Assembly (NCBI GenBank): GCA_965644315.1
Contig: CBFFRQ010000034.1
Coordinates: 1-64,000, forward strand
DNA: 64,000 bases
Reading direction: 5' to 3'
Origin: Caecitellus pseudoparvulus
Lineage: Eukaryota > Protista > Bigyra: Bicosoecida
Positions 1 to 61,396 of the stretch are shown piece by piece; position 1 is the stretch's first letter; every line of letters begins with the position of its first letter. The notes beneath the pieces were generated by a model, which was given only the letters and a program-made list of their open reading frames with translations, had not been told where the DNA came from and did no database searches. The translations under genes and the position numbers were made by a program.

Positions 1-811
1 ACGCCTCCCCGCACTCGCCACGCAAGGACTGCCACCACACACTCCACAGCAACACACGACCCAACGGCACACCCGCCACCAACCACAGCACGCTCACCAC
101 ACAAGGCACCACCAGCGCCGGCCAATGGTGCCACGACACCAGCACAGGCACGCCGCCACCCACCCACGCCAGCACCAGTGCCGCAGACCCCAGCCCCAGC
201 AGCTGCCAGTCCAGGGTGGGGGACCACACTGCACAGGGCGGCAGGCCCGCTTCGGGGTGGGCTGGGTGTATGGCTACGCCGTCCAGGCGGCCGCGTGTGG
301 CTGTGGTGTACGCAGTGGCGATCTGGCTGGTTGTGCGGCTCCACCCGACGCTGTACTGCTCGCCCTTGAAGTCGTACCTGGGTGTGGGGGGTGAGGCTGG
401 GTGGAGGGTGTGAGTTGGGAGCGGGGTGTGGGCGGGGGTACGCACCACATGATGATGGAGTAGCAGGCAACGTGTTTGTCTCCTCTGAGGAAGGGCAAGG
501 ACATGTGGTTGTGCAGGTATCTGCCTTGAAAGTGCAGGAGTACACACTTTGATGAACTGGCGATCCAGCGTTGGGAAGAAACACAAGTAGCTGGCACGAC
601 AAGGAAGTCCCGTTGCCGTCTCAGTCTTCCCCACTGCCAGGAAGGAGTGGTGCCGTGTCTTGTGGTGCCGTTGAGCAGTGCGGAAATTCACTGCAGTGGG
701 TCAACGTACTGCGCCGCTGTCCCAGAAGAGCTGCATCCAGACCAGGCAGAGCAGAGTGCACAGTCCAAAACAGGCACCCATAATGATGCCAACGTCATCT
801 TTGCTGAGCAT
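1..811 (-). CDS. DUF3592-like membrane protein, array copy 1 (3' end outside window)
   Basis: Exons 811-710, 633-548, 484-446, 377-<1 with GT-AG introns of phase 0,2,2. Spliced: MLSKDDVGIIMGACFGLCTLLCLVWMQLFWDSGA/WGRLRRQRDFLVVPATCVSSQRWIASSSK/GDKHVACYSIIMW/YDFKGEQYSVGW... Confidence 0.75.
680..688. promoter_or_regulatory. Recurrent motif GCGGAAATT/AATTTCCGC in intron 1 of the array gene (also 1921, 3162, 4403; variant GCGGAATTT at 5665)
   Basis: Read directly; lies in intron 709-634. Function inferred only. Confidence 0.55.
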
Positions 812-1041
812 CGTGCGGCAGTGGTGTTCGTGGCGGTTGCACAGGCTAGGTGGATTGGATGGCTCGGAGCCGGGCACGTCAGGGAGTCTCGGACGCTTTC
901 TTTGGTACAGGAGGAACTGCACAGACTTAACTTTGCCATGCATTACTTGGCTTGGCAGTGATCTGTCGCGCAGGGTGCGCAGTTTTGCTTGAAGCTGGTG
1001 TGAGCGTCGAGAGGGGCTCCACACTGGGGGGCCAATCAACC

Positions 1042-2052
1042 TCAGTCAACCCAGGTTTGAGTTCTGCGGGTCGGCGTCACGGCTGCCTTGGTGGCGCGCT
1101 TCAAACTCAACTTCATGATTCTGACTGACTTCTGCTTCGCACCTTCTCCGTAGGTGCCCCACCAATTTGCAGGTGGGGGTGCAGGGCGCAGCAGTTTCCG
1201 AAAGTTCGCTCTGGACACAGGCCACCCATCTTCATCCACAAACGCCTCCCCGCACTCGCCACGCAAGGACTGCCACCACACACTCCACAGCAACACACGA
1301 CCCAACGGCACACCCGCCACCAACCACAGCACGCTCACCACACAAGGCACCACCAGCGCCGGCCAATGGTGCCACGACACCAGCACAGGCACGCCGCCAC
1401 CCACCCACGCCAGCACCAGTGCCGCAGACCCCAGCCCCAGCAGCTGCCAGTCCAGGGTGGGGGACCACACTGCACAGGGCGGCAGGCCCGCTTCGGGGTG
1501 GGCTGGGTGTATGGCTACGCCGTCCAGGCGGCCGCGTGTGGCTGTGGTGTACGCAGTGGCGATCTGGCTGGTTGTGCGGCTCCACCCGACGCTGTACTGC
1601 TCGCCCTTGAAGTCGTACCTGGGTGTGGGGGGTGAGGCTGGGTGGAGGGTGTGAGTTGGGAGCGGGGTGTGGGCGGGGGTACGCACCACATGATGATGGA
1701 GTAGCAGGCAACGTGTTTGTCTCCTCTGAGGAAGGGCAAGGACATGTGGTTGTGCAGGTATCTGCCTTGAAAGTGCAGGAGTACACACTTTGATGAACTG
1801 GCGATCCAGCGTTGGGAAGAAACACAAGTAGCTGGCACGACAAGGAAGTCCCGTTGCCGTCTCAGTCTTCCCCACTGCCAGGAAGGAGTGGTGCCGTGTC
1901 TTGTGGTGCCGTTGAGCAGTGCGGAAATTCACTGCAGTGGGTCAACGTACTGCGCCGCTGTCCCAGAAGAGCTGCATCCAGACCAGGCAGAGCAGAGTGC
2001 ACAGTCCAAAACAGGCACCCATAATGATGCCAACGTCATCTTTGCTGAGCAT
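1042..2052 (-). CDS. DUF3592-like membrane protein, array copy 2 (4 exons)
   Basis: Exons 2052-1951, 1874-1789, 1725-1687, 1618-1042. N-terminal TM helix, beta-rich loop (VVPATCV...YSIIMWYDFKGEQY...VAIHPAHPEA), then two hydrophobic helices; this pattern resembles DUF3592 proteins (family call by eye). Confidence 0.78.
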
Positions 2053-2282
2053 CGTGCGGCAGTGGTGTTCGTGGCGGTTGCACAGGCTAGGTGGATTGGA
2101 TGGCTCGGAGCCGGGCACGTCAGGGAGTCTCGGACGCTTTCTTTGGTACAGGAGGAACTGCACAGACTTAACTTTGCCATGCATTACTTGGCTTGGCAGT
2201 GATCTGTCGCGCAGGGTGCGCAGTTTTGCTTGAAGCTGGTGTGAGCGTCGAGAGGGGCTCCACACTGGGGGGCCAATCAACC

Positions 2283-3293
2283 TCAGTCAACCCAGGTTTG
2301 AGTTCTGCGGGTCGGCGTCACGGCTGCCTTGGTGGCGCGCTTCAAACTCAACTTCATGATTCTGACTGACTTCTGCTTCGCACCTTCTCCGCAGGTGCCC
2401 CACCAATTTGCAGGTGGGGGTGCAGGGCGCAGCAGTTTCCGAAAGTTCGCTCTGGACACAGGCCACCCATCTTCATCCACAAACGCCTCCCCGCACTCGC
2501 CACGCAAGGACTGCCACCACACACTCCACAGCAACACACGACCCAACGGCACACCCGCCACCAACCACAGCACGCTCACCACACAAGGCACCACCAGCGC
2601 CGGCCAATGGTGCCACGACACCAGCACAGGCACGCCGCCACCCACCCACGCCAGCACCAGTGCCGCAGACCCCAGCCCCAGCAGCTGCCAGTCCAGGGTG
2701 GGGGACCACACTGCACAGGGCGGCAGGCCCGCTTCGGGGTGGGCTGGGTGTATGGCTACGCCGTCCAGGCGGCCGCGTGTGGCTGTGGTGTACGCAGTGG
2801 CGATCTGGCTGGTTGTGCGGCTCCACCCGACGCTGTACTGCTCGCCCTTGAAGTCGTACCTGGGTGTGGGGGGTGAGGCTGGGTGGAGGGTGTGAGTTGG
2901 GAGCGGGGTGTGGGCGGGGGTACGCACCACATGATGATGGAGTAGCAGGCAACGTGTTTGTCTCCTCTGAGGAAGGGCAAGGACATGTGGTTGTGCAGGT
3001 ATCTGCCTTGAAAGTGCAGGAGTACACACTTTGATGAACTGGCGATCCAGCGTTGGGAAGAAACACAAGTAGCTGGCACGACAAGGAAGTCCCGTTGCCG
3101 TCTCAGTCTTCCCCACTGCCAGGAAGGAGTGGTGCCGTGTCTTGTGGTGCCGTTGAGCAGTGCGGAAATTCACTGCAGTGGGTCAACGTACTGCGCCGCT
3201 GTCCCAGAAGAGCTGCATCCAGACCAGGCAGAGCAGAGTGCACAGTCCAAAACAGGCACCCATAATGATGCCAACGTCATCTTTGCTGAGCAT
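2283..3293 (-). CDS. DUF3592-like membrane protein, array copy 3
   Basis: Copy 2 shifted by 1241 bp; Tyr->Cys in WWGT[Y/C]GEG. Confidence 0.78.
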
Positions 3294-3523
3294 CGTGCGG
3301 CAGTGGTGTTCGTGGCGGTTGCACAGGCTAGGTGGATTGGATGGCTCGGAGCCGGGCACGTCAGGGAGTCTCGGACGCTTTCTTTGGTACAGGAGGAACT
3401 GCACAGACTTAACTTTGCCATGCATTACTTGGCTTGGCAGTGATCTGTCGCGCAGGGTGCGCAGTTTTGCTTGAAGCTGGTGTGAGCGTCGAGAGGGGCT
3501 CCACACTGGGGGGCCAATCAACC

Positions 3524-4534
3524 TCAGTCAACCCAGGTTTGAGTTCTGCGGGTCGGCGTCACGGCTGCCTTGGTGGCGCGCTTCAAACTCAACTTCATGA
3601 TTCTGACTGACTTCTGCTTCGCACCTTCTCCGCAGGTGCCCCACCAATTTGCAGGTGGGGGTGCAGGGCGCAGCAGTTTCCGAAAGTTCGCTCTGGACAC
3701 AGGCCACCCATCTTCATCCACAAACGCCTCCCCGCACTCGCCACGCAAGGACTGCCACCACACACTCCACAGCAACACACGACCCAACGGCACACCCGCC
3801 ACCAACCACAGCACGCTCACCACACAAGGCACCACCAGCGCCGGCCAATGGTGCCACGACACCAGCACAGGCACGCCGCCACCCACCCACGCCAGCACCA
3901 GTGCCGCAGACCCCAGCCCCAGCAGCTGCCAGTCCAGGGTGGGGGACCACACTGCACAGGGCGGCAGGCCCGCTTCGGGGTGGGCTGGGTGTATGGCTAC
4001 GCCGTCCAGGCGGCCGCGTGTGGCTGTGGTGTACGCAGTGGCGATCTGGCTGGTTGTGCGGCTCCACCCGACGCTGTACTGCTCGCCCTTGAAGTCGTAC
4101 CTGGGTGTGGGGGGTGAGGCTGGGTGGAGGGTGTGAGTTGGGAGCGGGGTGTGGGCGGGGGTACGCACCACATGATGATGGAGTAGCAGGCAACGTGTTT
4201 GTCTCCTCTGAGGAAGGGCAAGGACATGTGGTTGTGCAGGTATCTGCCTTGAAAGTGCAGGAGTACACACTTTGATGAACTGGCGATCCAGCGTTGGGAA
4301 GAAACACAAGTAGCTGGCACGACAAGGAAGTCCCGTTGCCGTCTCAGTCTTCCCCACTGCCAGGAAGGAGTGGTGCCGTGTCTTGTGGTGCCGTTGAGCA
4401 GTGCGGAAATTCACTGCAGTGGGTCAACGTACTGCGCCGCTGTCCCAGAAGAGCTGCATCCAGACCAGGCAGAGCAGAGTGCACAGTCCAAAACAGGCAC
4501 CCATAATGATGCCAACGTCATCTTTGCTGAGCAT
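3524..4534 (-). CDS. DUF3592-like membrane protein, array copy 4
   Basis: Copy 3 shifted by 1241 bp. Confidence 0.78.
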
Positions 4535-4764
4535 CGTGCGGCAGTGGTGTTCGTGGCGGTTGCACAGGCTAGGTGGATTGGATGGCTCGGAGCCGGGCAC
4601 GTCAGGGAGTCTCGGACGCTTTCTTTGGTACAGGAGGAACTGCACAGACTTAACTTTGCCATGCATTACTTGGCTTGGCAGTGATCTGTCGCGCAGGGTG
4701 CGCAGTTTTGCTTGAAGCTGGTGTGAGCGTCGAGAGGGGCTCCACACTGGGGGGCCAATCAACC

Positions 4765-5802
4765 TCAGTCAACCCAGGTTTGAGTTCTGCGGGTCGGCGT
4801 CACGGCTGCCTTGGTGGCGCGCTTCAAACTCAACTTCATGATTCTGACTGACTTCTGCTTCGCACCTTCTCCGTAGGTGCCCCACCAATTTGCAGGTGGG
4901 GGTGCAGGGCGCAGCAGTTTCCGAAAGTTCGCTCTGGACACAGGCCACCCATCTTCATCCACAAACGCCTCCCCGCACTCGCCACGCAAGGACTGCCACC
5001 ACACACTCCACAGCAACACACGACCCAACGGCACACCCGCCACCAACCACAGCACGCTCACCACACAAGGCACCACCAGCGCCGGCCAATGGTGCCACGA
5101 CACCAGCACAGGCACGCCGCCACCCACCCACGCCAGCACCAGTGCCGCAGACCCCAGCCCCAGCAGCTGCCAGTCCAGGGTGGGGGACCACACTGCACAG
5201 GGCGGCAGGCCCGCTTCGGGGTGGGCTGGGTGTATGGCTACGCCGTCCAGGCGGCCGCGTGTGGCTGTGGTGTACGCAGTGGCGATCTGGCTGGTTGTGC
5301 GGCTCCACCCGACGCTGTACTGCTCGCCCTTGAAGTCGTACCTGGGTGTGGGGGGTGAGGCTGGGTGGAGGGTGTGAGTTGGGAGCGGGGTGTGGGCGGG
5401 GGTACGCACCACATGATGATGGAGTAGCAAGTCACTCGTTTTAGACCACTGCAAGAGGGGCGCAGGCGTACAGGTGGACGCAAGGCACAGCGCCACGCAA
5501 GGCACACGGCAGTTGCTGGCGCACTCGACTGAACTGGCTTCCCAGGTCTTGGCCACCGCACAAGTGGCGGGAACGACAACACCATGCAGCTGTATGCGAA
5601 TTCTTTGCAGCTGAGAGGGGCGGGGGTGTGTGTGCTGCTGCAGAACTGGAGGTCTTGTCCGACTGCGGAATTTGAGCAGGCAACGCACTGGCTTGCTGCT
5701 GATGAACAGCTGGACCCACAGAATGACAACTAGAGTCAACAAGCCGAAACACAATCCCATGAGAACACCGACGTGCTCAGGAGAAAGGATGACCTGGTTC
5801 AT
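4765..5802 (-). CDS. DUF3592-like membrane protein, terminal copy with divergent exons 1-2 and identical exon 4
   Basis: Exons 5802-5689, 5610-5525, 5448-5410, 5341-4765. MNQVILSPEHVGVLMGLCFGLLTLVVILWVQLFISSKP/LQRIRIQLHGVVVPATCAVAKTWEASSVD/GLKRVTCYSIIMW aligns residue for residue with the array copies; exon 2 (86 nt) and exon 3 (39 nt) have the same lengths. Confidence 0.8.
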   Translation of the reverse strand: MNQVILSPEHVGVLMGLCFGLLTLVVILWVQLFISSKPVRCLLKFRSRTRPPVLQQHTHPRPSQLQRIRIQLHGVVVPATCAVAKTWEASSVECASNCRVPCVALCLASTCTPAPLLQWSKTSDLLLHHHVVRTPAHTPLPTHTLHPASPPTPRYDFKGEQYSVGWSRTTSQIATAYTTATRGRLDGVAIHPAHPEAGLPPCAVWSPTLDWQLLGLGSAALVLAWVGGGVPVLVSWHHWPALVVPCVVSVLWLVAGVPLGRVLLWSVWWQSLRGECGEAFVDEDGWPVSRANFRKLLRPAPPPANWWGTYGEGAKQKSVRIMKLSLKRATKAAVTPTRRTQTWVD

Positions 5803-14111: not shown

Positions 14112-17051
14112 ATGGCTGCAACAGATGCCACTGAGCTGGATGCGATGGACAACACGCGGGAGTTCGAGCAGATTGAGGAGGATTTCCAGGAGGTGCGGAA
14201 ATTGGCCATCGCGCGATCTTGGCTCGACTGTCGTGCCTTGCTGCTGCACACCGGCTCTGCACACCTTGGGACGCCACTTCTGTGCAGGTTTTGGAGCAGT
14301 TAGTGGGGGATGCGAGTCTGGAGCGCTTTCGCAAGGAGTACGAGAAGCTGCATGAGCACCTGAAGAAGGTGAGGCGTGGCGGCCGGCACTGGCGTGCTTT
14401 GGTGCACTGGCGCTGACGCTGGCGCTCACCACCCCCGCCCCCAACTGCCTCCTCCCCAGTCCCATGACAATGAGCGGCGTCTGGTGCGCAAGGTGAAGGC
14501 CATGAACAGTGAGCTGGCACAGATGGGGTCCAAGGTGGCCCAGGCCATGAAGCTGAGCGCGGACGATGACAGCACCGCCGCCAAGCTGCGGAAGAAAGTG
14601 GACACGCTTTACGGCATGGTGGATGCGGCCAACGCGCAGGAGGAGGAGGCGCGCGCGACGGTGGCCAAGTTGCAGAAGGAGGTGACTCGCCTGACGGAGG
14701 TGGTTGACTCGTACACCAGCATGCTGGGAGAGGATTCGTCGCTGGAGGAGGTGATCGCGGCGCGGAATACGCTGGCCCAAAAGCACCAGGAAGCCCTGCA
14801 CACCATCGAGTACGAGCAGGGCCGCGCAGATGAACTGCGCCTGAAGCTGGAAAGCGCCCACACACAGCACAAGGAGAAGAAGGCTGTCATCGGCGAGCTC
14901 AAGTCACAGCTGCGCAGCAAGGCTGACGAGCACGTGCGGGAACTGCGGAAGCGGGAGAGTGTGGAGACACAGATGGCAGAGCTGCGCAAGGACCTCGCTG
15001 AGCGCACCCGGGAGCTGCAGGCGCTGAAGGCGGATTTGGAGAGCGCCAAGACTGAGGCGGCGCGGAATTTGCTCGCGGTGACGGAGGCACAGAGCGAGGT
15101 GAAGGAGCAGGTGATGCACGTGGACGAGGTGGAGAGCCGCAACGCAGCACTGCATAAGCAGATTCGAGACCTGCAGGCGCGCTGTGACACCATGACTGAG
15201 GCCAAAATGGGCGCTGACAAGGAGTTGAGTGCGGCGCGGCTGGAACGCAGTCGCGTGGAGGGCGAGAAACGCCGCCTGGCAGGGAAGCTGAAAAACGCCG
15301 AGGGGCGCATCGACCGCCTGAAGAGCGGGCTGGACGAGCAGAAGCTGACGGAGTCCAGCCTGCGATCCGAGGTCGTCTCCCTGCAAAAGCAACTGGACGC
15401 TCTGGCCAAAGACTCCACCTCCAAGGCACGGCAACTTGGCCGCCTGCAAATGGACTATGAGCGGGGGCAGGAGAAGTTGGCAGGGGAGGCGGCCCGAGTG
15501 CGTGAAGCGGCGACCAGTCTGGAGGAGGAGAAGGCGGCGGCGCGCAAGCAGGATGAGCAGCTGGCGCTGTTCACTCGGAATGCGGAAAAAGCGCGCAACG
15601 TCATTGACAAGCTCACCATGCAGGTGCAGCGGCACAAGGCGGAGGTGCAGGCAGCACAGGCGGCCACGGCGGCAGCCAAGGCGCAGGTGAGTGCCGCCCA
15701 GGCCACGATTAAGGAGGGGGAGAGCAAGGAGGCAGAGCTGATGGCGCGGCTGAAACAACAGCAGACGCTGTACGAGAGTGTGCGGGCAGACCGGAACATG
15801 TACTCCAAGCAGCTCATTGAGAGCCAGGACGAGATCGCGGAGATGCGGCGCACGTTCAAGGTGAAGCAGCACCAGATCACGCAGCTGAAGGAAGACATTG
15901 GGGGGAAAGACCGTGCGCTGATGGCGGAGCACTATGAGAAGAAGGGGCTGTCCAAGATGCTGCAGCAGCGTGAGTTCGAGAACGAGGAGCTGAAGAAGCT
16001 GCTGAAGGAGTCAGAGGCCAGCAACGAAAAGCTGGCGACGGAACTGGACGAGCTGAACGCCGCCATCCGGCGCCAGGACGAGGAAGGCGAGAAGCAGCGG
16101 CAGAAACTGAAGGAGGTCGTGACGCAGCGCGACATCCTGGGCACACAGCTCATCCGGCGGAATGACGAGCTGGCCCTGCTGTTCGAAAAGGTGCACATCC
16201 TGCAGTCCCAGCTGCAGCGTGGGGAGGCCACGTTTGGCGAGAAGCTGGACTACATCCGCATGTTGAAGTTGAAGGTGGCGGACTTGACGCGAGAACTTGC
16301 GCTGGCCAAGAAATCCTCTGGGCGGGTGGAGGACCTGCAGCGCGACACACACCGCCTGCACAGCGAGCTGCTGCAGGAAAAGACCAAGGTGAAGGCGCTG
16401 AGCGAGGAGCTGGAGAACCCCATGAACGTGCACCGCTGGCGGAAGCTGGAAGGCAGCGACCCCGCAACGTACGAGCTGATCCAGAAGATCCAGACGCTGC
16501 AGAAACGCCTCATTTCCAAGACGGAGGAGTGCGTCGAGAAGGACCTGCAGCTGCGCGAACGAGACAAGCTGTACGTAGAGCTGAAAGGCATTCTCGCGCG
16601 GCAGCCGGGGCCCGAGGTGGCGGAGCAGCTGTCCATGTACCAGCAGAAGCTGAGCGAGAAGACGCGCCAGTTGACCTCCATGGCGGCCGAGCTGAACATG
16701 AGCACGGTGCACATGAACGAAGTCAAGTTCGACAAGGAGCGCCTGCACCGCGAGCTGCAGGACACGAAACAGCGCTTCTACCAGTACAAACGGCGCACGC
16801 AGCTGCTGGGAAGCTCAGCGGGTGGAGCGACACACACCTCAGAGCCAGGCCACGCCACCACGGCACCCCTGGCCTCCACCACAGGCAGTGCTGCCGTGCA
16901 CCCCTCTGGAGCCAGTGTGGGCGCAGTTTCGACGCAACATTTTGCAGCAGAGGGCGGCCTGACTGCCGGCTTGGCGGCGACGCAACGCAGCAAGGCGCTG
17001 GCGGGCTCCACACGGCGGTTCACGGGTGGCGGCTTCAGCACGCATGCATGA
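14112..17051 (+). CDS. CFAP58: Cilia- and flagella-associated protein 58 (CCDC147 family coiled-coil)
   Basis: Exons 14112-14192, 14288-14368, 14460-17051. FEQIEEDFQEVLEQLVGDASLERFRKEYEKLH...SHDNERRL, QQTLYESVRADRNMYSKQL, RDILGTQLIRRNDELALL and ELENPMNVHRWRKLEGSDP are recognisable CFAP58 motifs. Confidence 0.95.
14195..14203. promoter_or_regulatory. Recurrent motif GCGGAAATT in CFAP58 intron 1
   Basis: GT-GCGGAAATT at the donor of intron 14193-14287. Confidence 0.55.
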
Positions 17052-17287: not shown

Positions 17288-20200
17288 ATGGGGCACGGCG
17301 GAGCGCCAGGCAGCGGGAAGCGGCGCAAACACGGCAAGAAGCACAAGCACAAGCACAAGCGGCATGAGGGGAGCCAGCCAGCCCACAGAGAGGGCGGTAA
17401 ACCGAATTTGTACCAGACAGCGCAGTCCCTCATTGGATCCCTGCCAGGGTTGCTCCCCAAGACGTGAGTCTGCCGGGCGGGGTGCGGCCCAATTTCCGCA
17501 CGCCACCACTGCTTTGCCCCCATCCACCCCTTCCTGCTCACTTCCTTGCCCAGAATGGAGTTCAAGCGCGGTCGTGAATCAGGATCAGCTCGCCCGACTC
17601 CAACTGGCGCCAAGGTTGAGGTGCGTTGCGACTGCTGGCGTGCCTGGCATCTCCGCGCCTGTTCTGGTGCTGGCTCTGACACACTCACACACCCCCCTCT
17701 CCACTCAGGAGCTGGACCTGCCTTCCAAGGGCCTCTTTGTCTTCCAGAACTGGGAGGCGCTGCGTCGGCTCCACGCGTGGCGCAAGGTGCTGCCACCCGC
17801 CGCCGGGCTGGTGAACCATGGCAATACGTGCTTCTTGAACGCAACGTTGCAGTGTCTGGCAGCTACGCCGGTGCTGACACAGCAGCTCGCGACAGAGCTG
17901 CGCAACCCCATCAAGACCAGCGATGGACAGCTGCGAGGCCATGCGCTGGTCCGGGCCAACCTCGCGTATGTGCTGGCCGCCATGCGAGCCAAGTCGCGGC
18001 AGGTGTTCAGTCCGAAACGCATCGTGCGCAACCTGCGCATCATCGGGCGGCAGTTTCACTTTGGGCATCAGGAGGACTCGCACGAGTTCCTGCGGTGCCT
18101 GCTAGAGTCCCTGCACCAGGCTGAGCTGCACGCGGCGGGTGTGCCTGACAACGCACCTGGACGTCGGGCTGAGACATCCTTCGTGCACGCCGCTTTCGGA
18201 GGCTACACACGATCTCAAGTCAAGTGCCCTCAGTGTCCCTATGCGTCCAACACGTACAGCCCATTTTTGGATCTGTCCCTCACCATCTCGAAACGCACGC
18301 CAGACGTCAAAGCGGCGCTGAAGCGTTTCACGGCGTCAGAGCGCCTGGACGCAGACAACGCATGGAAGTGCAGTGGGTGTGGGCAGCGGGTGCAGGCGTC
18401 CAAGGGCACAAAACTGCACCGCACACCCAATGTGCTGACTCTGCAGCTGAAGCGTTTCGCGTTTGGCGGGGGAGGGGGCATGTTCGGCGGGTTCGGCGGA
18501 TTTGGCGGCGGATTTGGTGGCGGGCGCAAGTTGGGGTACCCCGTCGCCTTCGCGCCTTCCCTGGACCTGGCCCCGTACTGCTCAAAGGATGTGGAGGCGA
18601 GGGAGGGGTCACCCCCCCTGTACGACCTGCAGGGGGTGCTGGTGCATTCGGGGTCCAGTTTGCACAGTGGGCACTACTACTCCTTCGTCAAGTGCCCCAA
18701 CGGCATGTGGGTGTGCGCAAACGACGAGGATGTGTCCGCTGTGAAACTGTCCACCGTCCTGGCACAGCAAGCGTACATGCTCTTCTACACCCGCCGCACG
18801 CCAGTGACCCCCCTGCCCGAAGAAGGGGCAGTGACGCGCCCCCCTCCTGCGCTGGCTGCGAGTCAAGCCTCAGCTGCCCACCGTGCGGCAGACGCAGCAG
18901 CGGAACCCCCCGCACCGAAACGGCCCAAACCAGACGCCCCTCCAAGTGTGGCACCATCAGCCTCCACTGGCTTGACTGCTGGCGGGGATGCGGTGAGTGA
19001 CTTTGCCATTGCCACGACGGGCGTAACGCATCGTGGGGCGCTGGACGAAGCCACCGCCCACAGCACCGACACTCTGGACACAGCGGCCACAGCCTGGGCA
19101 CCACCTGCCGCCGCATCCACCGGACTGCTGCTGCCTGGCACGGCGGGGCAGGCAGCTATGGCGCTGTTGGGTGGTCAGCCAGAAACGCCCGGCACGCCAG
19201 CCATGTCGCTGCCGCCGACACCGCCCCCGCCCCACGGCAGTCTGCGCCCCGCCGCTCCGTCTGTGCCCAAAGTTTCGTCCACCACAGTGCGGGCTGGTGT
19301 GCGTGCTGCGTTGGCAGAGGAGGCGGCGCGTGGGCCCACACCGGGCACCGGGGTGGGCTGCCTCAACCGTGGCCTCATCCTCGCAGCCAAGCAGGATTCC
19401 CTCACATCGGACTCGGATACCTCGGATGACTCTGACTCGTCTGATGACGCGGAGCTGGGGCCACCTTCTTCGTCTAGTGGCGTCAGTATGCGAACCAGTC
19501 ATGTAGGAGCCACTCATGCCGATATCGCCCACCCTGGCACCAAAGCCGCCGAAAAACCGGCGCCCACTGCAGCCTCAGAGTCCAGCAGCAACTCAAGTAG
19601 CAGTGATGACTCGGATGATGACAGTGACTCATCCTCCGACTCAGACGCCAGCGCTGCTGCGGCGGCAGAGCTTCGCGCAGCACGCCGCGCAATTTCAGAT
19701 CGCGTCGTTTCCTCGACTAATGTGACTCGTGGCCGGGAGCGGGTGACTCTGACGGGGAAACGCCGGCGCAGTGTCCCAGAGGGCACCCTCGTCGCCCAGC
19801 CCCTCTCTGTGGGGGGCGGTCGCGGGGTGGTGCATGCGACCACCGATCTCGGTGCTGCCGACTGGTCAACTGACGTCACTGTCGGACAAGGCAGTGCGCG
19901 CAGCGCAGCCAGCACAGCGGAGCAAGGCACGCGTAGCGCCCAGCCCGCATCAGCTGACGTCGTGCTGGAGCGCACACGGCGCAAGGCCGAGCGCGGGCAC
20001 CGTGGCGGTTGGGACGACTGGGTGGACAAGGGGAAGGTGAAGAAGGTGCGTGGCGAGAAACGCGCCCGGGACGGGGCTGCGGAATTCGACGCCATGCACT
20101 CTGCCCGTCAAGCGGAGGCGGGGGTGGGTGCCCCCCGTCGCGGCGTGGAGATGTCCGCGGAGTCGCGGAAGAAACGTGCGCGGCGCCAGGAGCGGCAGCA

Positions 20201-20516
20201 ACTGGCGCCAGCTCACGCCAGCCCCGTGGCGAGCAGGACTGGTGGCCAGCCCGATGTCAGCGGCATGTCTGACATCCAGGCAGCCTTTGCGCTGTACGGC
20301 GGTGCTGGGGGCTCGCACCGCGACACGCCTGCTGCGCCGGACAGTGCGGCAGGCGTCCCGACTGGGCAGGATTTCTGGCGACCTGACACGCCCCGACGGG
20401 GGGGGCACAGCTGGAGGGGGGGGAGGGGGCGAGGCGGCCAGGGGCACTTTCGTGGACGGGGGCGTGGGAGAGGCCGAGGGCGGGGGCGTGGGAGGGGGCG
20501 TGGACGGGGGAGGTGA
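17288..20516 (+). CDS. Ubiquitin-specific protease, USP36/USP42 (plant UBP23)-like
   Basis: Exons 17288-17463, 17554-17620, 17709-20516. Cys box GLVNHGNTCFLNATLQCL, QEDSHEFL, LQLKRF, His box GVLVHSGSSLHSGHYYSFVK; C-terminal WDDWVDKGKVKKVR resembles the USP36 nucleolar motif; RG-repeat tail. Confidence 0.92.
17491..17499. promoter_or_regulatory. Recurrent motif AATTTCCGC in USP intron 1
   Basis: CCCAATTTCCGCAC inside intron 17464-17553. Confidence 0.55.
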
Positions 20517-21260: not shown

Positions 21261-21269
21261 GCGGAAATT
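21261..21269. promoter_or_regulatory. Recurrent motif GCGGAAATT about 35 bp upstream of the giant receptor ATG
   Basis: CCGCGGAAATTGAC upstream of ATG 21304. Confidence 0.5.
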
Positions 21270-21303
21270 GACGGCGCACGCGCCCACCTTTGGCCAGTCC
21301 TGG

Positions 21304-39682: not shown

Positions 39683-41056
39683 TTAGGCTTGTTTTGTGTG
39701 GGTTTCTGCCTCGTGGTGCAGGTCCACCGCCCCCAAGTGCTCCGAGGCGTCTAGCGTTTCCTCTGCATGCGGCGTTTCTGTGCCGGCGTCAGCGGCGGTG
39801 TGGTGCTTGTTCACCTGCTTCAGGCCCAGCCACCCAGGCCCGAACTTGTCGGCAATGATGGCCCCGAACACCACGAACACGGCACTCCACTGGGTGGTGG
39901 ACATGGGGTGCCCATGTGCCAGCACTGACACGAGCAGAGTGAAGAACTTGCGGGTCGTGGTCACGGTGGTCAGCACGAGGGAGTCGAAATTCATCACCGT
40001 GTAGAAGATGAAGAGCTGTCCCACCGCAGAGGAGACGGCGAACAGCGCCGTCGCCACCCACAGGTCTGGGTGATCCACCAGGTACTGCAGGCCTGGCACT
40101 GCCTGCCCAAGAGTCACAGCTGCCAGGCCGGCGATAAGCACGGCCCACACGTTTTGCATGGCCATGAACAGAACGGAGGAAGTCTGCACCTTCGCTTGCA
40201 GCTCCTCCTGACGGGGCCCTGTCAGGGCGTCAAAGGACAGCGACGCGAAGAGCAGCCCGTACCCAATGAGGGTGTTGAAGAGGTCGGCGCCGTCGTCATC
40301 CACTGCTCGGGGCTTAATGCGGCTCAGCTGGAAGATGGCGATGCCAGCAGCCATGGCGACGACGCAGACATACTTCAGCCAGTGGTAGTGCTTGCCCAAG
40401 TACAGCACGCGCGCCAGCATGACTGCGATAAGGTGGGGAGAGGAGTGCTCGGGCAGTCTGCGGAAATCGAAAGGTCTGTGCAGACTATGCAGAAAATCTC
40501 ACCAGGAATCATCTTGCAGGACTTCACGAGGGCCATGGTGGGATAGCTGCAATGTGCAGGTGTGTGAGATGACTGTCCACGTGCTGTATCGCGCTTGGGC
40601 AGGCGCAAACGGAAGGTTTGAGCCGACAGACACGTGGCTCGCTAAATCCGCACCTGACGAATGAGATGGCTTCGGTACTGGCAGTCATCGCAGCCAGGTA
40701 CGTGAAGGAAATGGTAAACAGCGCTGCGCATGGCAACCATGTACTGTGGACACTTCAGCGAGGCCTAGCGAGCGCACTCGGCACGCACTGCTCTGTGACG
40801 TCCACGACATGAATGGAGCAGCAGTCTTCGGCGGTGGAGCCACGGCGCCTGTTGCAGACAGAATCACATGTGCAGCGTAGCCCACGAGGGCATTGGCGGC
40901 ACACTGGATGGCCAGCAGCAACCACGTGCCGCTGAACTTCGTCCCATCCGCCTGGGTCCGGAACATGGCCTCCTGCACATAGCCGTACGTGAGGTAGCTT
41001 GCGTAAATGCCACCCACGCACACCAAAAAGGCCAGTGTACCGTTGTGCTGTGCCAT
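39683..41056 (-). CDS. UAA-family nucleotide-sugar/ATP transporter, SLC35B1/HUT1-like (4 exons)
   Basis: CVGGIYASYLTYGYVQE, SYPTMALVKSCKMIPVML, FDALTGPRQE, GQLFIF, LTTVTTTRKFFTLLVSV; three short introns, first boundary not firmly fixed. Confidence 0.92.
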
Positions 41057-53831: not shown

Positions 53832-55126
53832 TCACTCGCCGCCTGTGGCCTTGACCACCGCTGCGCACGCCCTGAAACGCGCCAAGCACGCCTTGGCACT
53901 CTTGCCCTCCAGGCCGGGCTGTTTGGACACCCACTTCCACTTGGCCGACACAGCTGCCTTCACCGCCGCTCGCCCCAGGCCAGAGGTGCTCTTTCCCAGC
54001 TCAGGTGGCATATTCCGCAGCGCAGTTTCAAGGGCCGCTTGCTCCTCGGCGCTCCACGCAATCGGCGCAGGGGCAGGGGGAGAGTCAGCACTGGTGGTTT
54101 GTTTCGGCTTGCCTGATGCTGCGTTTCGCAGGGACTTGACCATGGCGCTGACATCTGCCACCGTGCAGCCGTCGCCGATGAAGTCAGCGATTCTATCAAA
54201 TCTGTGCCGCGTGCCGCCGGGAAACTTCGCCAGCGCACGCGAGAGCCGGTGCAGCGCGTCGGCAGTGACTCGGAAGGCGCCGCCCTGCTCCGGCGGCGAG
54301 TCACTCTCGTCGCTGCTGTGGTCGTCCGAGTCACTGTCGGAGTCACCGCCCCCCCCGCGCTGGCCACGAGCCTTGGCCGCTGCTGCCCGCACACTCTGCG
54401 TCGCACTCTCAGCTGCAGCTGCTGCCGCGGCGTGCGCTTCGCGTTGGCGCCGCGCTTTTGCCTGGACCTTGCGCAACGCAGCAGCCGACGCCTGTGAAGC
54501 CGCCGCAGCGGCAGCTGCTTCCGCCTCCGCTGCAGCCCTGGACTTGGCCAGGGCTGCATCCAGAGACCGCCCCGCTGACTTGCCTGCCTTCTTGCTGCGC
54601 TGCTTCCAGGCCAGGTACACGGCAGGCGCTGTGGCCAGTGCGGTGACTGCAAGCACGCCGAGCCAGGCCAGCGGCGTGTCCTCCACAGCAGACATGCCAG
54701 CGGCACGCGACGCCGCTTCGAAGGATGAGTAACGGTGCGTGTCTTCCTCTGCCAGGTCTCCTTTGTCGTACGCTGCGCGCAACTCCTCGTCCTTCAGCAC
54801 CTCGTACGCTGTGCAGAGAGCGTGGCGCCGGTTGGCGTGTGCGTGCGGAAATTGAGCCAGGCACACGCTGCCACCGTGCCCTGCTCCACCGCACCATTCA
54901 CGATGTCCGTGAACGCCTCCTCTGCAGCAGCTTTCTCCTCAGCTGGGACTTTGTCCGGGTGGTACTTCAACGCCAGCTTTCGATACGCGCGTGTGATGTC
55001 GCGTTGGCTGGCCGTCGGCGGCACACCCAGCACGCCGTACAGATCCTGCCCACTGTCGCCGCTGCTCGCGAGGCACACGGTTGACGCTGCCAGCAGGGCT
55101 GTGAAGAGGAACTTCGTGATGCCCAT
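53832..55126 (-). CDS. DnaJ protein with signal peptide, TM helix and two SANT/Myb-like domains (DNAJC1/ERdj1-like)
   Basis: Exons 55126-54895 and 54808-53832: DLYGVLGV...[13 protein letters not shown]...[16 protein letters not shown]; TM; [20 protein letters not shown]; [13 protein letters not shown]...[11 protein letters not shown]. Confidence 0.88.
54845..54853. promoter_or_regulatory. Recurrent motif in DnaJ gene intron 1
   Basis: GTGCGGAAATTGAG within intron 54894-54809. Confidence 0.55.
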
Positions 55127-55335
55127 CTTGCAGTGTGCCTGTCGCTTGCGCTGCTCCCAGCCCTGGCTTCGCGCACTCGCTGAGCGGCGTGTGTGGGACA
55201 AACGCCGCTCGCAAGCCCGCGAGAGCGGAACACTGCCTCAGGACAGTGAATGGTCACAAGTGCATACATGCCTCCCTGCCCAGGGCATGTACGCTGGCAG
55301 GAGTTGCATTTTTGTGTGTCGTGGGCAGTTGCCTG

Positions 55336-56235
55336 TCAGCGCGGCTCAGGCGTGGGCGGGGCGTCTGCTGCGTTGCCACCCTCCTCCTCCTGCAGCAACG
55401 CACCAGTGGCGGGGTCAACCTCCACGGCCACCGTGGTGGGGTTCACATACGTGTGCCCTGTGCCGTCAAAGACACCCGTGGGCACTTCTCCTGCTGCGTT
55501 CACGAGCAGCACTGGTTGACCCGCCCAGGGCTTCAAGCGCTCCATGCCTGCCACAGCTGGGTCAGTGGTGTGGGAGGGGGGTGGTGCTCCAACACGAGGA
55601 GCGGGTGTAAAGCGGGGGTCCAGCTGCAGGCGCGTATTACGCGCTTCGTCCATCAGCACCACCCGCCCCATCAGCATGCGCAGCTCAGGCCGCCCCGCTC
55701 TCACGCCGAGCTCAGACACCACCACACTGCCGCCACCCGCACCACTCGCCCCCGCAGCTGCAGGAACAGAGGAAGCAGGTGCAGACAGCAGGATGCGCTC
55801 AGCCACCAGCGTCTTCACCGCCATCTGCCGGTGCTTGCGCAGCAGGCTCAGGCCAGCCGTAATGGCGACAGCGCCGCTGTGCGGGGGGAAGGACGTAAGG
55901 GAGTGACTCGGGCAGTGAAGCGGCGACACAATGCAGCAACGCACATTAGAATTGCGTTTGTGACCTCCAGAAACTGCACGCGGGCTTCCAGGTCTGCGCA
56001 GATGGCAGCGCAGAGTGTGCTGCTGAGGCGTGTGCGGAAATTGACTCGCCACACACGCACCTCCAGCCTGCACAGCCCCCGCACCTCCACTCCCCGTCCC
56101 GGGCACACCAGTGGACAGCTGTGGCAGTTCGCTCCTGTCGGAGGGCTTGATGCCCGCTTGTTTGCGCTTGTGGTGGTTGGCAAGCAGTCGCTCTTCGAAG
56201 CTCTGCTGTGGCGGGTCGGGTGGTGTCTGAGCCAT
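55336..56235 (-). CDS. Hypothetical single-pass membrane protein (3 exons)
   Basis: MAQTPPDPP...VQAG/DLEARVQFLEVTNAIL/IGAVAITAGLSLLRKHRQ... joined by two GTGCGT...CAG introns; no family recognised. Confidence 0.6.
   Translation of the reverse strand: MAQTPPDPPQQSFEERLLANHHKRKQAGIKPSDRSELPQLSTGVPGTGSGGAGAVQAGGACVASQFPHTPQQHTLRCHLRRPGSPRAVSGGHKRNSNVRCCIVSPLHCPSHSLTSFPPHSGAVAITAGLSLLRKHRQMAVKTLVAERILLSAPASSVPAAAGASGAGGGSVVVSELGVRAGRPELRMLMGRVVLMDEARNTRLQLDPRFTPAPRVGAPPPSHTTDPAVAGMERLKPWAGQPVLLVNAAGEVPTGVFDGTGHTYVNPTTVAVEVDPATGALLQEEEGGNAADAPPTPEPR
56034..56042. promoter_or_regulatory. Recurrent motif in intron 1 of the hypothetical TM gene
   Basis: GTGCGGAAATTGAC within the first intron. Confidence 0.55.
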
Positions 56236-56454
56236 GGCTCGCTGCTCACGCTCTGTGAACTTGAGGGCTGATTCAGTCACAGGGGGCGCGCTGCGGTGAA
56301 AAAGGGGGTAGTAGGCGGTAGTGGGGCGTGCCCTCCAGTTCGTTGGTGCTGTAGTTTTTGTGATAACGTAGTTGTCAAATTAGCGACAGATCGAATCAGT
56401 GTCTGCCTCCTTGTCCACACTTCGCCTGGCACTACAGCAGACCCACAGTTGAGC

Positions 56455-57722
56455 ATGGCTCGAGTGGCACTCCCCTTTCAGGAGGGCGATGAAGAGAAGT
56501 TGGGGGAGTTTCTGAGAGGCACCGGGGAAGGCGATGCCCTGGTGCACTTGGTGGTGACGGGCGACGCGCTGGCACTGCACTCAGCGGAAAGCGTGGTGAG
56601 GGGCGGGTGCGGAAATCGGTGCCCTGCACACGGCACACGCACCGCCGCCCTTGGTCACACAGACGGCGGAGAGCGAGGCCGCTCTGCTGGATGCCCTCCC
56701 GGAGCATGCCTCTGGTGTTGCATCTGCGAGTCTGTTCTTGCTGAAGGTGGGCTCGCCCAGTTGGCGCCTGGTTACCTACGCGGACGACAGCTTGCACAGC
56801 GCCAAGGCGAAGATGCTGGTGGCGCTGACGCAAGAGACGCTGCAGAAACAGCTCTCCTTCGTCAAGTTCCTGCCCAGTGCGTGCGGGTCCCCCTTTGACG
56901 GCTGGCCCCTGAAGCTTATCTCTGCCTGTACTTGTGCCAGGCTTGCACTGCCCCTGCCGTGCTGCCCACAGGCCACCACGCGACGAGCCTGGACGAACTG
57001 AATGCTGCTGCGCTGCACGACAGCAGTGACTCGGCTGCGCAGGAGGCACCCCTGTCGCAGGCAGAGCGAGCGGCTGTGACCGTGGCAGCTGCGGAATCTG
57101 AAGCCAGGCAGGCGGGAGCGCAGGGTGGTACTGAAGTACCTTTCAAGGCCAGCGAAGCACTGCTGGCTGCATTGTCAGGCTTTGCAGAGGGCGCGCTGCT
57201 CATTGTGCGTGGATGCTGGGCAGGTGCGCTGGGCATGCGGCGCACACGTGCCCTCACTGCGTTTCACAGAACCTGGACGCGAGTGAGCGGTTTCACCTGC
57301 TGAGTCAGCACAGCAGCGTGCAGGCTGCCAAGGCAGCTCTGCCTGAGGACGACGCGGCGTACCTGCTGTTCCACACGCAAGGGGCAGGTGGTGGTGTGAA
57401 GCTGCTGCTGTGGTGTCCTGATGGGACAGGTGCGAAAACTCGTATGGTGGCTAGCACGGCGAAAGGCGCCCTCCGATCTCACGCAGAGGCAGCTGGAGTG
57501 GTAGTGGTGGGCAGTGGCGATGCACATGACATGGAGGATGTGGAGGAGGTGCTGGGCGCGGGTGGTCCCGCCGCCGTCGCTGCATCCGCTGCCGCCGCGT
57601 CAGCTGATGACTCAGCTGCAGTGCAGCAGCTGCAATTCGCCAAGCCAGCTGCGCCGGGAGCTGGCCGGCGTAAGCCCCGCAAGACGCGCGGCAAGCCGCA
57701 AATGGCGTTCATGGACGTGTAA
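56455..57722 (+). CDS. Twinfilin-like actin-binding protein (two ADF-H domains, capping-protein-binding tail)
   Basis: Four exons; WRLVTYADDS...KAKMLVALT, APLSQAE linker, LLWCPDGTGAKTRMVAST, C-terminal FAKPAAPGAGRR. Confidence 0.8.
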
Positions 57723-57791
57723 TGCACCATGCATGCATTGGACACTTCCCCTGTTCGAGCAGGTGGCGTTTTTGCTGCGCGCACACACCGC

Positions 57792-58590
57792 TCACGCCTT
57801 GCTGCCTTTGAGCGCTTTCTTCACAGCACACACCAAGCCCGACTTCTGCGCTGCAAGGTACAGCGTGCCCATGAACAGCCCGAGCAGGCCAATGTCCGAG
57901 ATGATGGCACCCGCATACCTTCCTTTGGGTCCCTTGGACTTATACCCAGCCGAGTACAGCACGCGGCCAATGAGAAACGTCACGCTGCAGGCTCCCGCAA
58001 GGAAGGGCTGGTGCTGTGCGTTGGCCGCCAGCAGGCCGGAGAAGATTGCCAGGCTCTCCACAGTGTTGTAGTGCGTGCGCTGGGCGATGTTGAAGCGCGC
58101 CCAGTCCTCGAAGGGCAGCAGCGCGGCGATGGGGCCGTTCCCTGTGTCAGAGAAAGCCGTGTGAGGCGTGGTGTGCAGCGTCGCAATACGCAGCACACGC
58201 GCCACCGACAGCGACGGCAAGGCATGCCACGCACCCATGTCGGGGTAGCCGTCTTCAATATCCTGTCCAAAGGTAGCCTTGAACTTCTCAGACATCACTT
58301 GGTACTGTGCACGGGTCAGGCGTCGGCGGAGGTGGGCGTGCGGAAATTGGAACCCTTTCCGCACACGGCCCGCTCCGCACCTCAGGCTTGGCCTTGAACT
58401 CCTCCGACTCGAAGAGCTCCTTGCGCAGCTTCATAACGTCAAACATCTGGCTCGCCACATACACCGTCAGGCCGCCCATGCTCACTGCGATCATGGTCTG
58501 CCCGATTCGGGTGAGCGGGCAGCCGCTGCCGCTGGGGCAGCTGCCGCTGCCCTTCATGGGGCAGGTGCCAGAGGGAGCTGCTGCTGCCAT
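57792..58590 (-). CDS. MAPEG-family protein (microsomal glutathione S-transferase 3-like)
   Basis: Three exons; GYPDMG/NGP...WARFNIAQRTHYNTVE...FLIGRVLYSAGYKSKGPKGRYAG. Confidence 0.9.
58340..58348. promoter_or_regulatory. Recurrent motif in MAPEG intron 1
   Basis: GTGCGGAAATTGG within the first intron. Confidence 0.55.
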
Positions 58591-58830
58591 GGCGAGGGGG
58601 GTTGGAGATGGATTCCAGGTATGCGTGTGGGGCGTTTCAGCACTTGTTTCGAGGCGGGTGGAGAAGGTAAGTGTTTCAGGTTTGGCGCGCCCTGCTCAGA
58701 TGAGGATGGAGCAAGAATGCGCCCCCACGCCCAACGACTCGCAGCTGTCAAGCTCGCGCTCTGTGGGCAAAGATCTGGCCTCAACCTGCTCTGCCCGCGG
58801 GGTCTCTGGCGAGCGTGCAGTCGCACGTGC

Positions 58831-61396
58831 CTAGCCTTGGACGAGGGGTGCTTCGGGCGCCGCCTCCGTAGTACGCGCCGGGGCGGTGGTGCCAAAGGTG
58901 CCGTCGGCACGCTCCCACTTGGCACGGGCACAGGTGCGTTTGCGCCCTGCCTTGCGCAGCTCTGCAGCTGCGTAGTCTTCCCCTGATGCGCCGTAGATGT
59001 TGGCGCGCGTGGGGTCCACGCGGTAGATCCAGCGCTGGTACAGGTAGATGAGGAAGACGATGTCATCTCGGAACACGGACAGGCGGTGCATGGTGGGCAT
59101 TTCAATGACGAACGCGAACAGGTCGTCCACGATGGTGTTGAAGAAGCGGTACGTGAGGGCCTTCCACGGCAGGTGTGCGACGGACTTGAGGCGGTAATTG
59201 ATGAACAGCTGCGGCGTCAGCAGGATGAAGCCGAATGTGTACACCATGCCGGTGAGGGAGGTGATGACCCAGCTGAACCAGGACTTGTGTGTGTCGTACA
59301 GGAGGGAGTAGGCGGCGTACCCGAACACCACTGGGAACATGATGATGCCCAGGTGACTCATCGCCATGTCGTCGTACTCCTTGGTCTTGCTGCGCACGTA
59401 TGCGTCGTCCTTCGTCTCCCACTCGAACGTGGGCAGCACACCCTGGCCTGGTTGGGGCCACGTTATGCCCACTGCCATGGCTTTGGACAGCTTCCACACT
59501 TCAATGGCCAGACCCACGGCGGAGGAGCCCAGGATCATCCAGCTGGTGTCGTTGTCCCACAGGTACAGCAGGATGATGACTTGGAAGAACACATTCATGC
59601 CGACGGTACGCAGGGAGAGCCCTTCCAGGCTCTTGGTGTTCCGCCAGAAAGAAATGTCGTTGGAAAAGGCCAGGAACTCGAACAGCATGTGCAGCAGCGA
59701 CACCAGCATCGTCACGCCCAGCAGCACGGGGTTGCTGTCCAGGAACAGCTTCTTGATCATGTCTGACTCGCCTTCCGAGTGCGTGCCCCAGTCGGCCTGG
59801 GCACTCCACGTCGCGTCCATTTGGTTCTGCAGACTGAACTTCCACAGCGAGGAGGGTGTGAAGGTCAGGTGCAGTGGCACCTCCACCACTGACGCGTTCA
59901 GCTCCACCAGATCAGCCGTGAGCGTCCAGAAATCAGACACGTGCAGCAGGGGCAGATAGGCGGGTGGGCGCCCGTGGGGGTCCACTTGCAGCACATCAGC
60001 GACGTACGGCGCAAAGGCGCCTGTCTTCTGCTTCGAAAAATCAACCAGCGTCGTCACAGCACCGGCTGGTCGCCAGTACGGCAGAATGGGCCGTTCCTCA
60101 TCCTCCTCCTCATCCGTGTCGCTACGGGCGCCCCCGGGTGAGCTACCAGCGGGCGTGTCGTCCAGCCCGTCAAATTCCGCATCGATGGCGTCCAGGTCAT
60201 CGTCAGAGTCAGTCGGCGGGGCTGGGTCGGCGGAGGGCGTGTCACTGCTCCCCCAGCCGAACGGGTCAGCCAGCAGGTCCCGAGCATCGGGGTGGGGGGT
60301 GGCATCCGGTGCGGCGGGGTCCCCACTGCCACCCTCCTCCTGTGACCCCAGCAGGGACACAAGTTGCACTTCCTTGCGTTTGGGCATGTACTTGACCAAC
60401 GGGTGTACAACGTGCACTGCCCCTCGGCGGGAATAGGACGCTGCCGTGGGAGCGGGGTTCACGCCCTCCTCTGCCAGCCACACGTGCAGGAAGGCTGATG
60501 CGTTTCCGACGGTGAGCGCACTGGGCAGCGTCAGGTTCACGTGTCGCGAGCGGAAGTTGTGCAACTCGAAGTCGTGCGTGAGCCCGCCCTGGTGCCACAC
60601 TGGCACACAGCCACCGGCCGAGAAATCCACCTTCACAGCAGTCTCAAGTGACCCGCCTGGGGCGGCGGCATCTCCCACGTTGGATGGTGCGGCGGCGGCA
60701 TCCTCTGCTTCTGCGCTGCCCGCCAAGCCAGCGACACTCCACAGCCAGCGCGCGGCAGACGCGACGCCCGTGGCGGCCTTGATGAGGAAGCTGCCACTGC
60801 CCTGGAATTCAAACGTTGTCACTTCCGTCGTCTGCATGTCGGGCGGCGGCGGCCGCCGCTCGGCAGCTTCCTGCAGCTGCCCTGTCAGCCTGTCGGGGTC
60901 GGCATGGTCACACACAAAGGCGTGCAGGGTGAACGGCTGCGACCTGTCCCAGGCACTGCCCAGCACCGTGCCCATGGGCAGCTGCGCAGGGGGCGTGTGC
61001 GCAGAGGGGTGGGGGTGTGCAAAGCCGCTGCCGGGGCGCACCTGCGGAAATTGCTCCACCCAAGCCAGCTCCTGCACGGAACGCACGCACCTGGTTGATC
61101 TCCAGCCGGCGCATGGCGTGGAAGTCCTCCAGCTCTTCCGGGTACTCCAGTCCCATCTTGATGCCCATGAGCGTCATGGGGCTGCCAGGCCCAGCCACCG
61201 GCACTGGTGTGGGTGTCGGGGTGAAAGCCGCCGCTGGCTCGGGCTGCGCTGGCTTCTGGCTGCTCCCGAAGAAGCGCGTGTAGAGGAAATACATCATGCC
61301 CACGTTGATGAGCAGCCCCATGATGCCAGGGCCCTGTGCTTCCTCCCGCTGTGGCGCACCACCACCACCGGTGGCGGCGGCGGCCTGGTCAGGCAT
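58831..61396 (-). CDS. CLPTM1-family membrane protein (lipid scramblase-like)
   Basis: Exons 61396-61091 and 60981-58831; NASAFLHV, YLPLLHVSDFW, LHMLFEFLAFSNDISFW, KTKEYDDMA, PQLFINYRLKSVAHLPW, DDLFAFVIEMPTMHRLSVFRDD, YQRWIYRVD. Confidence 0.96.
61044..61052. promoter_or_regulatory. Recurrent motif in CLPTM1 intron 1
   Basis: CTGCGGAAATTGC within intron 61090-60982. Confidence 0.55.

Follow-up and report, generated by a model that had tools for sequence, protein, structure and literature searches.

An 11-base word recurs near the starts of unrelated genes in Caecitellus pseudoparvulus, mostly within short 5'-proximal introns

The first 64,000 nucleotides of contig CBFFRQ010000034.1 of the bicosoecid Caecitellus pseudoparvulus, hereafter the window, carry a tandem array at their left end, a giant open reading frame (ORF) in their middle part and a series of compact genes for, among others, CFAP58, a UCH/USP protein, a DnaJ-domain protein, an ADF-H (twinfilin-like) protein, MAPEG and CLPTM1. 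These names had been proposed in an initial annotation made from the DNA alone and are borne out by Pfam matches and homologues. Distributed over these genes is one short word, the 9-mer GCGGAAATT, which occurs in 12 copies representing nine independent sites, since four of the copies lie within one array of 1241-bp tandem units, while 0.08 copies are expected from dinucleotide-preserving shuffles. All 12 positions listed in the initial annotation were matched by a recount, and its hand estimate of 0.3 expected copies proved conservative. Most copies in the window are preceded by T and followed by G, hence the word is longer than the 9-mer. When up to one mismatch is allowed in the resulting 11-mer, TGCGGAAATTG, 18 copies are found in the window against 0.89 expected; among the near-matches pointed out earlier, those at 5664, 13655, 40459 and 56608 fall within this limit, but those at 13723 and 37552 are weaker.

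Throughout the assembly (30.6 Mb) the 9-mer is present 1,804 times as opposed to 26 times for the same letters reversed, and the 11-mer 1,099 times as opposed to a single reversed copy, which amounts to one word per 17-28 kb. A preceding G is mildly preferred (436 of the 1,099 copies, ~40%), and such copies begin with GTGCGG. In addition, the variant ending in ..AAAATG is enriched 14-fold genome-wide (143 vs 10), and the variant ..AAATC displays a location pattern like that of the main word. Several small contigs form near-duplicate pairs (C1/C6, C5/C10 and C7/C11, with the loci L021/L030, L026/L042, L027/L043, L037/L044 and L038/L045), which diverge by 2-7% in non-coding DNA and are probably haplotigs or recent duplications, so that the genome-wide counts are slightly inflated. 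Literature searches with the word and its parts yielded primers and unrelated mammalian ETS, STAT and YY1 probes, and a description of the motif was not found.

The location of the word was analysed in 264 kb comprising the window and C13:1-200000, for which 73 gene models with 108 introns were kept. The models stem from a purpose-built hidden Markov model (HMM) gene finder trained on long ORFs in a single conservative round, which was retained because iterated self-training caused introns to proliferate; it recovers four of five RNA-confirmed introns and misses the array gene as well as some small genes. Spliced models were compared with Pfam and with homologues exon by exon, the exons being unjoined. 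A further sample comprised 30 loci of 3 kb; the small contigs C1-C12, which supplied 25 additional loci, are partly mutual duplicates and poorly modelled. Out of 22 independent exact 9-mers in the 264 kb, ten reside in first introns, which make up 1.9% of the bases (24-fold enrichment, binomial p = 3.5e-12), two in later introns less than 500 nt from the ATG (12-fold) and none in distal introns. Another four precede an ATG by no more than 150 nt (4.6-fold). In exons the word is depleted, with four sites or 0.2-0.4 of expectation, and other intergenic DNA reaches 0.4 of the expected number; the two sites elsewhere belong to the array gene and to one gene missed by the finder.

An unbiased k-mer count likewise places 7- and 8-mers of the motif at the top of the first-intron ranking, despite their AT-richness in a genome of 63% GC. 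Nevertheless, no more than about 19% of first introns, and about 4% of the others, contain the motif. Non-intronic copies lie 18-114 nt upstream of ATGs, with a few inside the first codons, and overall the copies extend from -114 to +478 with respect to the ATG. Moreover, a coding-potential profile around 46 sites revealed gene bodies extending outward from the motif on either strand, which is the picture anticipated for a motif near gene starts. The host genes are functionally unrelated and comprise, for instance, those for CFAP58, USP, DnaJ, MAPEG, CLPTM1, ADF-H, a flavoprotein reductase, FBF1 and a PXA-domain protein. Hence, nearness to the gene start in non-coding DNA, rather than intron rank, appears to be the decisive variable: the earlier designation of the word as a first-intron element captures the 24-fold enrichment, but 5'-proximal non-coding DNA is the better wording, since the motif is also carried by 5' flanks and by second introns close to the ATG.

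Table 1. Copies and variants of the word in the window, with the introns and genes that hold them.
Feature	Position	Strand	9-mer start	Setting
Motif variant TGCGGAAATTC	679-689	+	680	Tandem array; identical copies at 1920-1930, 3161-3171 and 4402-4412 (9-mers at 1921, 3162, 4403), one per 1241-bp unit
Candidate introns, 76 nt	634-709, 1875-1950, 3116-3191, 4357-4432	-		Small membrane-protein gene of the array; transcript reads AATTTCCGC across the motif
Variant TGCGGAATTTG	5664-5674	+		Corresponding candidate intron in the fifth, diverged copy of the array
Exact 11-mer	14194-14204	+	14195	Overlaps the 5' splice site (GTGCGG...) of first intron 14193-14287, CFAP58 gene 14112-17051 (+); transcript reads TGCGGAAATTG
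Exact 11-mer	17490-17500	-	17491	90-nt candidate intron 17464-17553 (+) in the 5' untranslated region, ending 1 nt short of the ATG of UCH/USP gene 17555-20516
Word copy CGCGGAAATTG	21260-21270	+	21261	34-44 nt 5' of predicted ATG 21304; same direction as the gene
Exact 11-mer	36149-36159	+	36150	Within giant ORF 22545-36875 (4,777 codons); scored as exonic
Variant TGCGGAAATCG	40459-40469	+		Predicted third intron 40423-40502 of gene 39683-41056 (-)
Exact 11-mer	54844-54854	+	54845	First intron 54809-54894, DnaJ-domain gene 53832-55126 (-); 277 nt from ATG
Exact 11-mer	56033-56043	+	56034	First intron 55994-56060, gene 55336-56235 (-); 197 nt from ATG
Variant TGCGGAAATCG	56608-56618	+		RNA-confirmed first intron 56596-56662, ADF-H (twinfilin-like) gene 56455-57722 (+); transcript reads TGCGG...
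Exact 11-mer	58339-58349	+	58340	RNA-confirmed first intron 58305-58380, MAPEG gene 57792-58590 (-); transcript reads CAATTTCCGCA
Inverted half copy TGCGGAAA	within 58305-58380			7 nt from the motif in the MAPEG intron
Exact 11-mer	61043-61053	+	61044	First intron 60982-61090, CLPTM1 gene 58831-61396 (-)

The individual sites (Table 1) agree with the placement given in the initial annotation: five of them (14195, 54845, 56034, 58340 and 61044) are in first introns called by the gene finder, those of the array and at 17491 are in candidate introns, and of the remaining two, one precedes an ATG and the other falls inside the giant ORF. The five first-intron sites are 87-348 nt from the ATG, in agreement with the limit of about 350 bp that had been stated for intronic copies. 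Between 53.8 and 61.4 kb, each of five consecutive genes possesses its own copy. Spliced contigs from seawater metatranscriptomes and other runs, covering 55101-61100, confirm five introns, two of which, those of the ADF-H and MAPEG genes, contain the motif, one in each orientation.

The array occupies positions 1-5800 and consists of four identical 1241-bp tandem units followed by a diverged fifth copy. A small protein appears to be encoded in each unit, its hydrophobic N-terminal exon preceding the 76-nt intron, which is a candidate only, deduced from GTACGT..GGCAG and an upstream ORF with a short membrane-peptide exon; the units gave no Pfam match, and the HMM gene finder calls no gene there. 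The copy in the giant ORF lies in a 65-nt stretch, 36127-36191, which runs from GTGCGG to GTGCAG with good donor, CTCAC and acceptor signals. Splicing of this stretch would shift the frame and lead to a protein end about 100-170 nt further on, which leaves the actual 3' terminus of the giant gene uncertain. In front of the ADF-H gene, two metatranscriptome contigs contain about 38 unmatched letters right before position 56441, which is located just after an AG and 14 nt 5' of the ATG. This sequence is absent from the window and could represent an upstream or a trans-spliced (spliced-leader) exon, although strain divergence explains it equally well.

Introns of this genome are typically short, with a mode of 65-80 nt, start with GTGCGT or GTGAGT and end with a C-rich tract and CRCAG. 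In the window and on C13 their 5' half is G-rich and their 3' half C-rich, and the donor GTGCG is nearly the reverse complement of the acceptor CRCAG. A branch-site consensus distinct from the motif was considered and holds for some introns only, CTNAY being present in the expected zone of just 21 of 128 predicted introns. At L026/L042 (~1490) and L032 (~1510) the start codon is directly followed by a 5' splice site (ATG|GTGCG..), so that exon 1 would supply the ATG alone; at L032 this donor is the GTGCGG of the motif itself.

With respect to orientation, the transcript reads TGCGG.. at about seven of the intronic sites in the sample and the reverse, CAATTT.., at about 11, and an acceptor-like CRCAG match 25-55 nt downstream accompanies 287 copies of one orientation and 265 of the other genome-wide, the background being 16%. 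The preference for AATTTCCGC on the transcript noted earlier is thus seen within the window, but the orientations are about equal in the genome at large. The distance of the motif to the donor varies over 3-74 nt and that to the acceptor over 2-145 nt, consistent with the varying distance to the 3' splice site that had been described, and sample copies reading TGCGG.. are mostly 3-14 nt away from the donor. A layout of donor, one nucleotide and motif seemed common on C13 and was abandoned, as it accounts for 10 of the 1,099 copies genome-wide. Introns with the motif exhibit no excess of RNA folding over shuffles (z of -0.43 vs -0.24 for other introns, p = 0.95) and, once the motif is masked, no mutual similarity except among allelic duplicates; a search of the window against Rfam gave no match. 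Together with the copies outside introns, these results on orientation, geometry, folding, masking and Rfam speak against the word being a branch site, an extension of a splice site, part of an RNA structure or of a small RNA encoded in introns, or the relic of a transposon.

It is accordingly quite improbable that the word acts in the pre-mRNA, where a splicing or RNA-binding factor would read it as a branch site, a splicing enhancer or a U1-related extension of the 5' splice site that controls removal of the first intron. Such a role would suit the fact that introns hold most copies, the retention of orientation at orthologous sites and the GTGCGG start of 40% of copies, which is a legitimate donor hexamer and coincides with the predicted donor at 14193, L029 and L032. 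A spliceosomal signal, however, would be found in most introns, on the transcribed strand and at a constrained distance from the splice sites, whereas the word is limited to the small fractions of introns given above, is intronic in both orientations with one RNA-confirmed case each, spreads over the distances just described and also occurs outside introns upstream of ATGs. Moreover, the copies reading TGCGG.. are mostly too near the donor to serve as a branch site.

The age of the association between word and intron is revealed by relatives. A search with the large exon of CLPTM1 returned a 98%-identical protein (L056) and two metagenomic relatives at 61-62% identity (L053 and L057). In the latter two, exon 1 ends at the same residue and is followed by a 74-nt intron, which contains GCAATTTCCGC in L053 and CCATTTTCCGCA (one mismatch) in L057, both oriented as in the window, and which outside the motif is unalignable with the window intron. 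In L056, the CLPTM1 intron and the MAPEG intron each retain the unaltered 11-mer. This contig (CAJNDU010010457.1 of GCA_905221625.1, deposited as Symbiodinium sp. KB8) matches the window at 56-64 kb with 95.6% DNA identity and probably entered that dinoflagellate assembly as contamination by this protist or by one of its close relatives; the stretch is also present in several runs of differently labelled organisms. A substitution-rate test on near-identical copies was discarded, since the pairs had been picked for presence of the motif and the test has no power at L056.

A second case is the flavoprotein reductase gene on C13, in which the motif resides in the second intron. Three relatives, 51-53% identical to the protein of this genome and 75-78% identical among themselves, share synteny and intron position, and the word is exact in L063 and present as CAAGTTCCGCA in L060 and as CATTTTCCGCA in L062, with orientation unchanged. 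The lineage R2 carries the same one-base variant, ..AAAATG, at both orthologous sites, i.e., in the CLPTM1 and the flavoprotein reductase genes. The relatives represent three lineages, namely the source samples of L053/L060, of L057/L062 and of L063. Overall, the word with at most one mismatch is found in five of five introns of the relatives, the chance per 70-nt intron being about 1e-3 as judged from shuffles. A corresponding test on USP found no clear orthologue, neither of the two contigs examined having the motif, and a metagenome scan with CLPTM1 delivered only two distant AT-rich relatives without the motif, both outcomes being uninformative. The flavoprotein reductase intron (L008:6326-6390, i.e., C13 76326-76390) further contains in all four taxa a second conserved block, the MluI-box-like GCACGCGT, which stands before the motif in L060, L062 and L063 and after it in this genome; in the 264 kb, four of 17 copies of this block are in 5'-proximal introns.

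Since motif introns are shared with lineages at 51-62% protein identity, these introns are old, and the word is under selection rather than decaying. This leaves hardly any credibility to the notion that the word is the surviving terminal sequence of an intron-generating transposon (an introner or miniature inverted-repeat transposable element, MITE) in the introns it created. The many short introns with a common short word and the inverted pair in the MAPEG intron (Table 1) would be in keeping with such an origin, but neither whole-element likeness nor recent lineage-specific insertion was found. Apart from allelic duplicates, masked motif introns are dissimilar, copies also exist outside introns, and the fixed layout next to the donor is restricted to the few copies mentioned above.

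A different kind of site in DNA, with a role other than transcription, for instance a replication origin bound by the origin recognition complex (ORC), a recombination hotspot, a boundary or a nucleosome-phasing element, is unlikely. Orientation independence, the high information of the word and conservation of the site would all be compatible with it, and a spacing of one per 17-28 kb resembles that of origins in yeasts. On the other hand, the sites lie within transcribed DNA, as far as about 480 nt inside genes, which is unfavourable for origin licensing in known systems. Moreover, they are tied to gene starts, other intergenic DNA being depleted, and neighbouring genes each have their own copy, as in the five in a row at 53.8-61.4 kb.

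Enrichment, closeness to gene starts, exclusion from coding sequence, occurrence in both orientations independently of splice geometry, unrelated host genes and deep conservation together form a profile that fits the site of a DNA-binding protein. The word is therefore reasonably likely to be recognized by an abundant, sequence-specific DNA-binding protein with a function at gene 5' ends. This agrees with the initial annotation in so far as a DNA-level, start-proximal cis-element was preferred there to a splicing signal, a view upheld by location, orientation, variable splice distance and conservation; its comparison with E2F sites, however, failed, as TTTCCGC is one base short of TTTSSCGC and the host genes are not a cell-cycle set. 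An E2F site was rejected on both counts.

According to this proposal, the recognition site would be T-GCGGAAATT-G, with a weak preference for a preceding G and tolerance of ..AAATC and ..AAAATG, and the factor would act at the 5' ends of roughly 10-20% of the genes of the organism. Being read as double-stranded DNA, the site could face either way and lie at any point between about 115 nt before and about 480 nt after the start codon. Its accumulation in short 5'-most introns and leaders would result from the difficulty of fitting 11 bases into coding sequence; the initial annotation had suggested that a scarcity of intergenic space may be the reason. The factor may activate transcription, keep the 5' region free of nucleosomes or act in the manner of intron-mediated enhancement (IME); hence, its site may belong to a general regulatory factor, or it may serve as an intron-resident enhancer close to the promoter, with a role like that of plant IME signals.

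Several points weigh against this interpretation. Protein binding and an effect on transcription or on 5' chromatin are deduced from the distribution of the word. Proximity to promoters is measured as distance from predicted ATGs, and the gene models derive from a purpose-built HMM applied to 264 kb that overlooks some genes. The GTGCGG beginning of many copies, being a valid 5' splice-site hexamer, makes a link at the RNA level possible. Furthermore, the non-intronic sites upstream of ATGs are nearly all in the same orientation (5/5), which hints at some directionality not predicted by a simple symmetric site. Two further copies in the C13 region of conserved synteny lack an equivalent in the relatives, which indicates that sites also turn over.

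General regulatory or architectural sites near gene starts are known from other eukaryotes, for instance those of Reb1 and Abf1 in yeast, the Telo-box and site II in plants, and those of YY1, NRF1 and ZNF143 in mammals. Like these, the word is a single dominant sequence at a large share of unrelated genes, lying close to the start and frequently on its downstream side, within the leader or first intron. It differs from them in sequence and is more strongly confined to introns than has been described for those sites. The IME signal of Arabidopsis, TTNGATYTG (10.1101/269852, PMC6760150, PMC8157754), offers a parallel in location, as ten of the 12 intronic sites of the present sample are in first introns and the other two in later introns less than 500 nt away from the ATG, distal introns having none; the likeness is one of word location. 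In contrast to the plant signal, the word is unrelated in sequence, occurs in both orientations and has a much higher information content, with 11 fixed bases and 1,099 copies vs 1 control copy. In addition, it is also found just upstream of ATGs (4-6 copies at 18-114 nt, measured from ATGs and not from start sites), whereas IME introns were reported to be without effect upstream of the start (10.1101/269852).

The oomycete flanking promoter region (FPR) element MWTTTNC is situated at the transcription start site, is forward-biased and was not found in a non-oomycete stramenopile (PMC3599244). The AATTTCC part of the word fits this pattern, the nearest named protein homologues are those of oomycetes, which are stramenopiles, and several copies stand 18-60 nt 5' of ATGs. 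A core promoter element at a fixed distance from the transcription start, of the type of the oomycete initiator (INR) and FPR or the metazoan downstream promoter element (DPE), is nonetheless very unlikely. Relative to predicted ATGs, the word has neither a fixed position, being spread from -114 to +478, nor the forward bias of FPR and INR. Moreover, the RNA contig of gene 55336-56235 extends at least 47 nt 5' of the ATG, so that 240 nt or more separate the motif from the transcription start upstream of it. The overlap with the FPR comprises seven bases and hence little information, and the word additionally includes CCGCA and reaches about 480 nt into genes.

As regards candidate readers, sites of heat shock factor (HSF) type with unusual spacing, GAATTC and TTCNGAA, were described in Phytophthora (PMC11267843). 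GAA-N-TT(G/C) within the word resembles two such half-units one base apart, forming an imperfect 1-nt-gapped pair (GAA-A-TT(G/C)), but the GCGG part belongs to no HSF site. The genome encodes about five HSF-type DNA-binding domains, and judging by these sequence resemblances, proteins with such domains may be the readers of the word, which is offered as a lead only.

A wider proposal, which we put forward as tentative and on balance doubtful, is that a clade of marine protists possesses an intron-resident gene-start system, in which one factor recognizes an 11-12-base word in the 5'-most intron or leader of over 1,000 genes and stimulates or licenses transcription of these genes. It would constitute an IME-like mechanism with a defined, high-information signal, and word and factor would drift together, as the ..AAAATG variant of lineage R2 may exemplify. 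In plants, IME signals are short and degenerate, and it is not yet well understood why some introns close to gene starts enhance expression. In this compact genome a single, sharply delimited word is found in the 5' introns and leaders of what is estimated to be one tenth to one fifth of the genes, and it has been retained over a long evolutionary time. As a practical marker, a copy of it predicts a gene start nearby. If a factor does bind, this organism would provide an unusually clean system for studying the control of expression from promoter-proximal introns, in which a pull-down with a single oligonucleotide could find the factor, and the word would improve both the annotation of gene starts and the design of transgenes in a poorly studied lineage.

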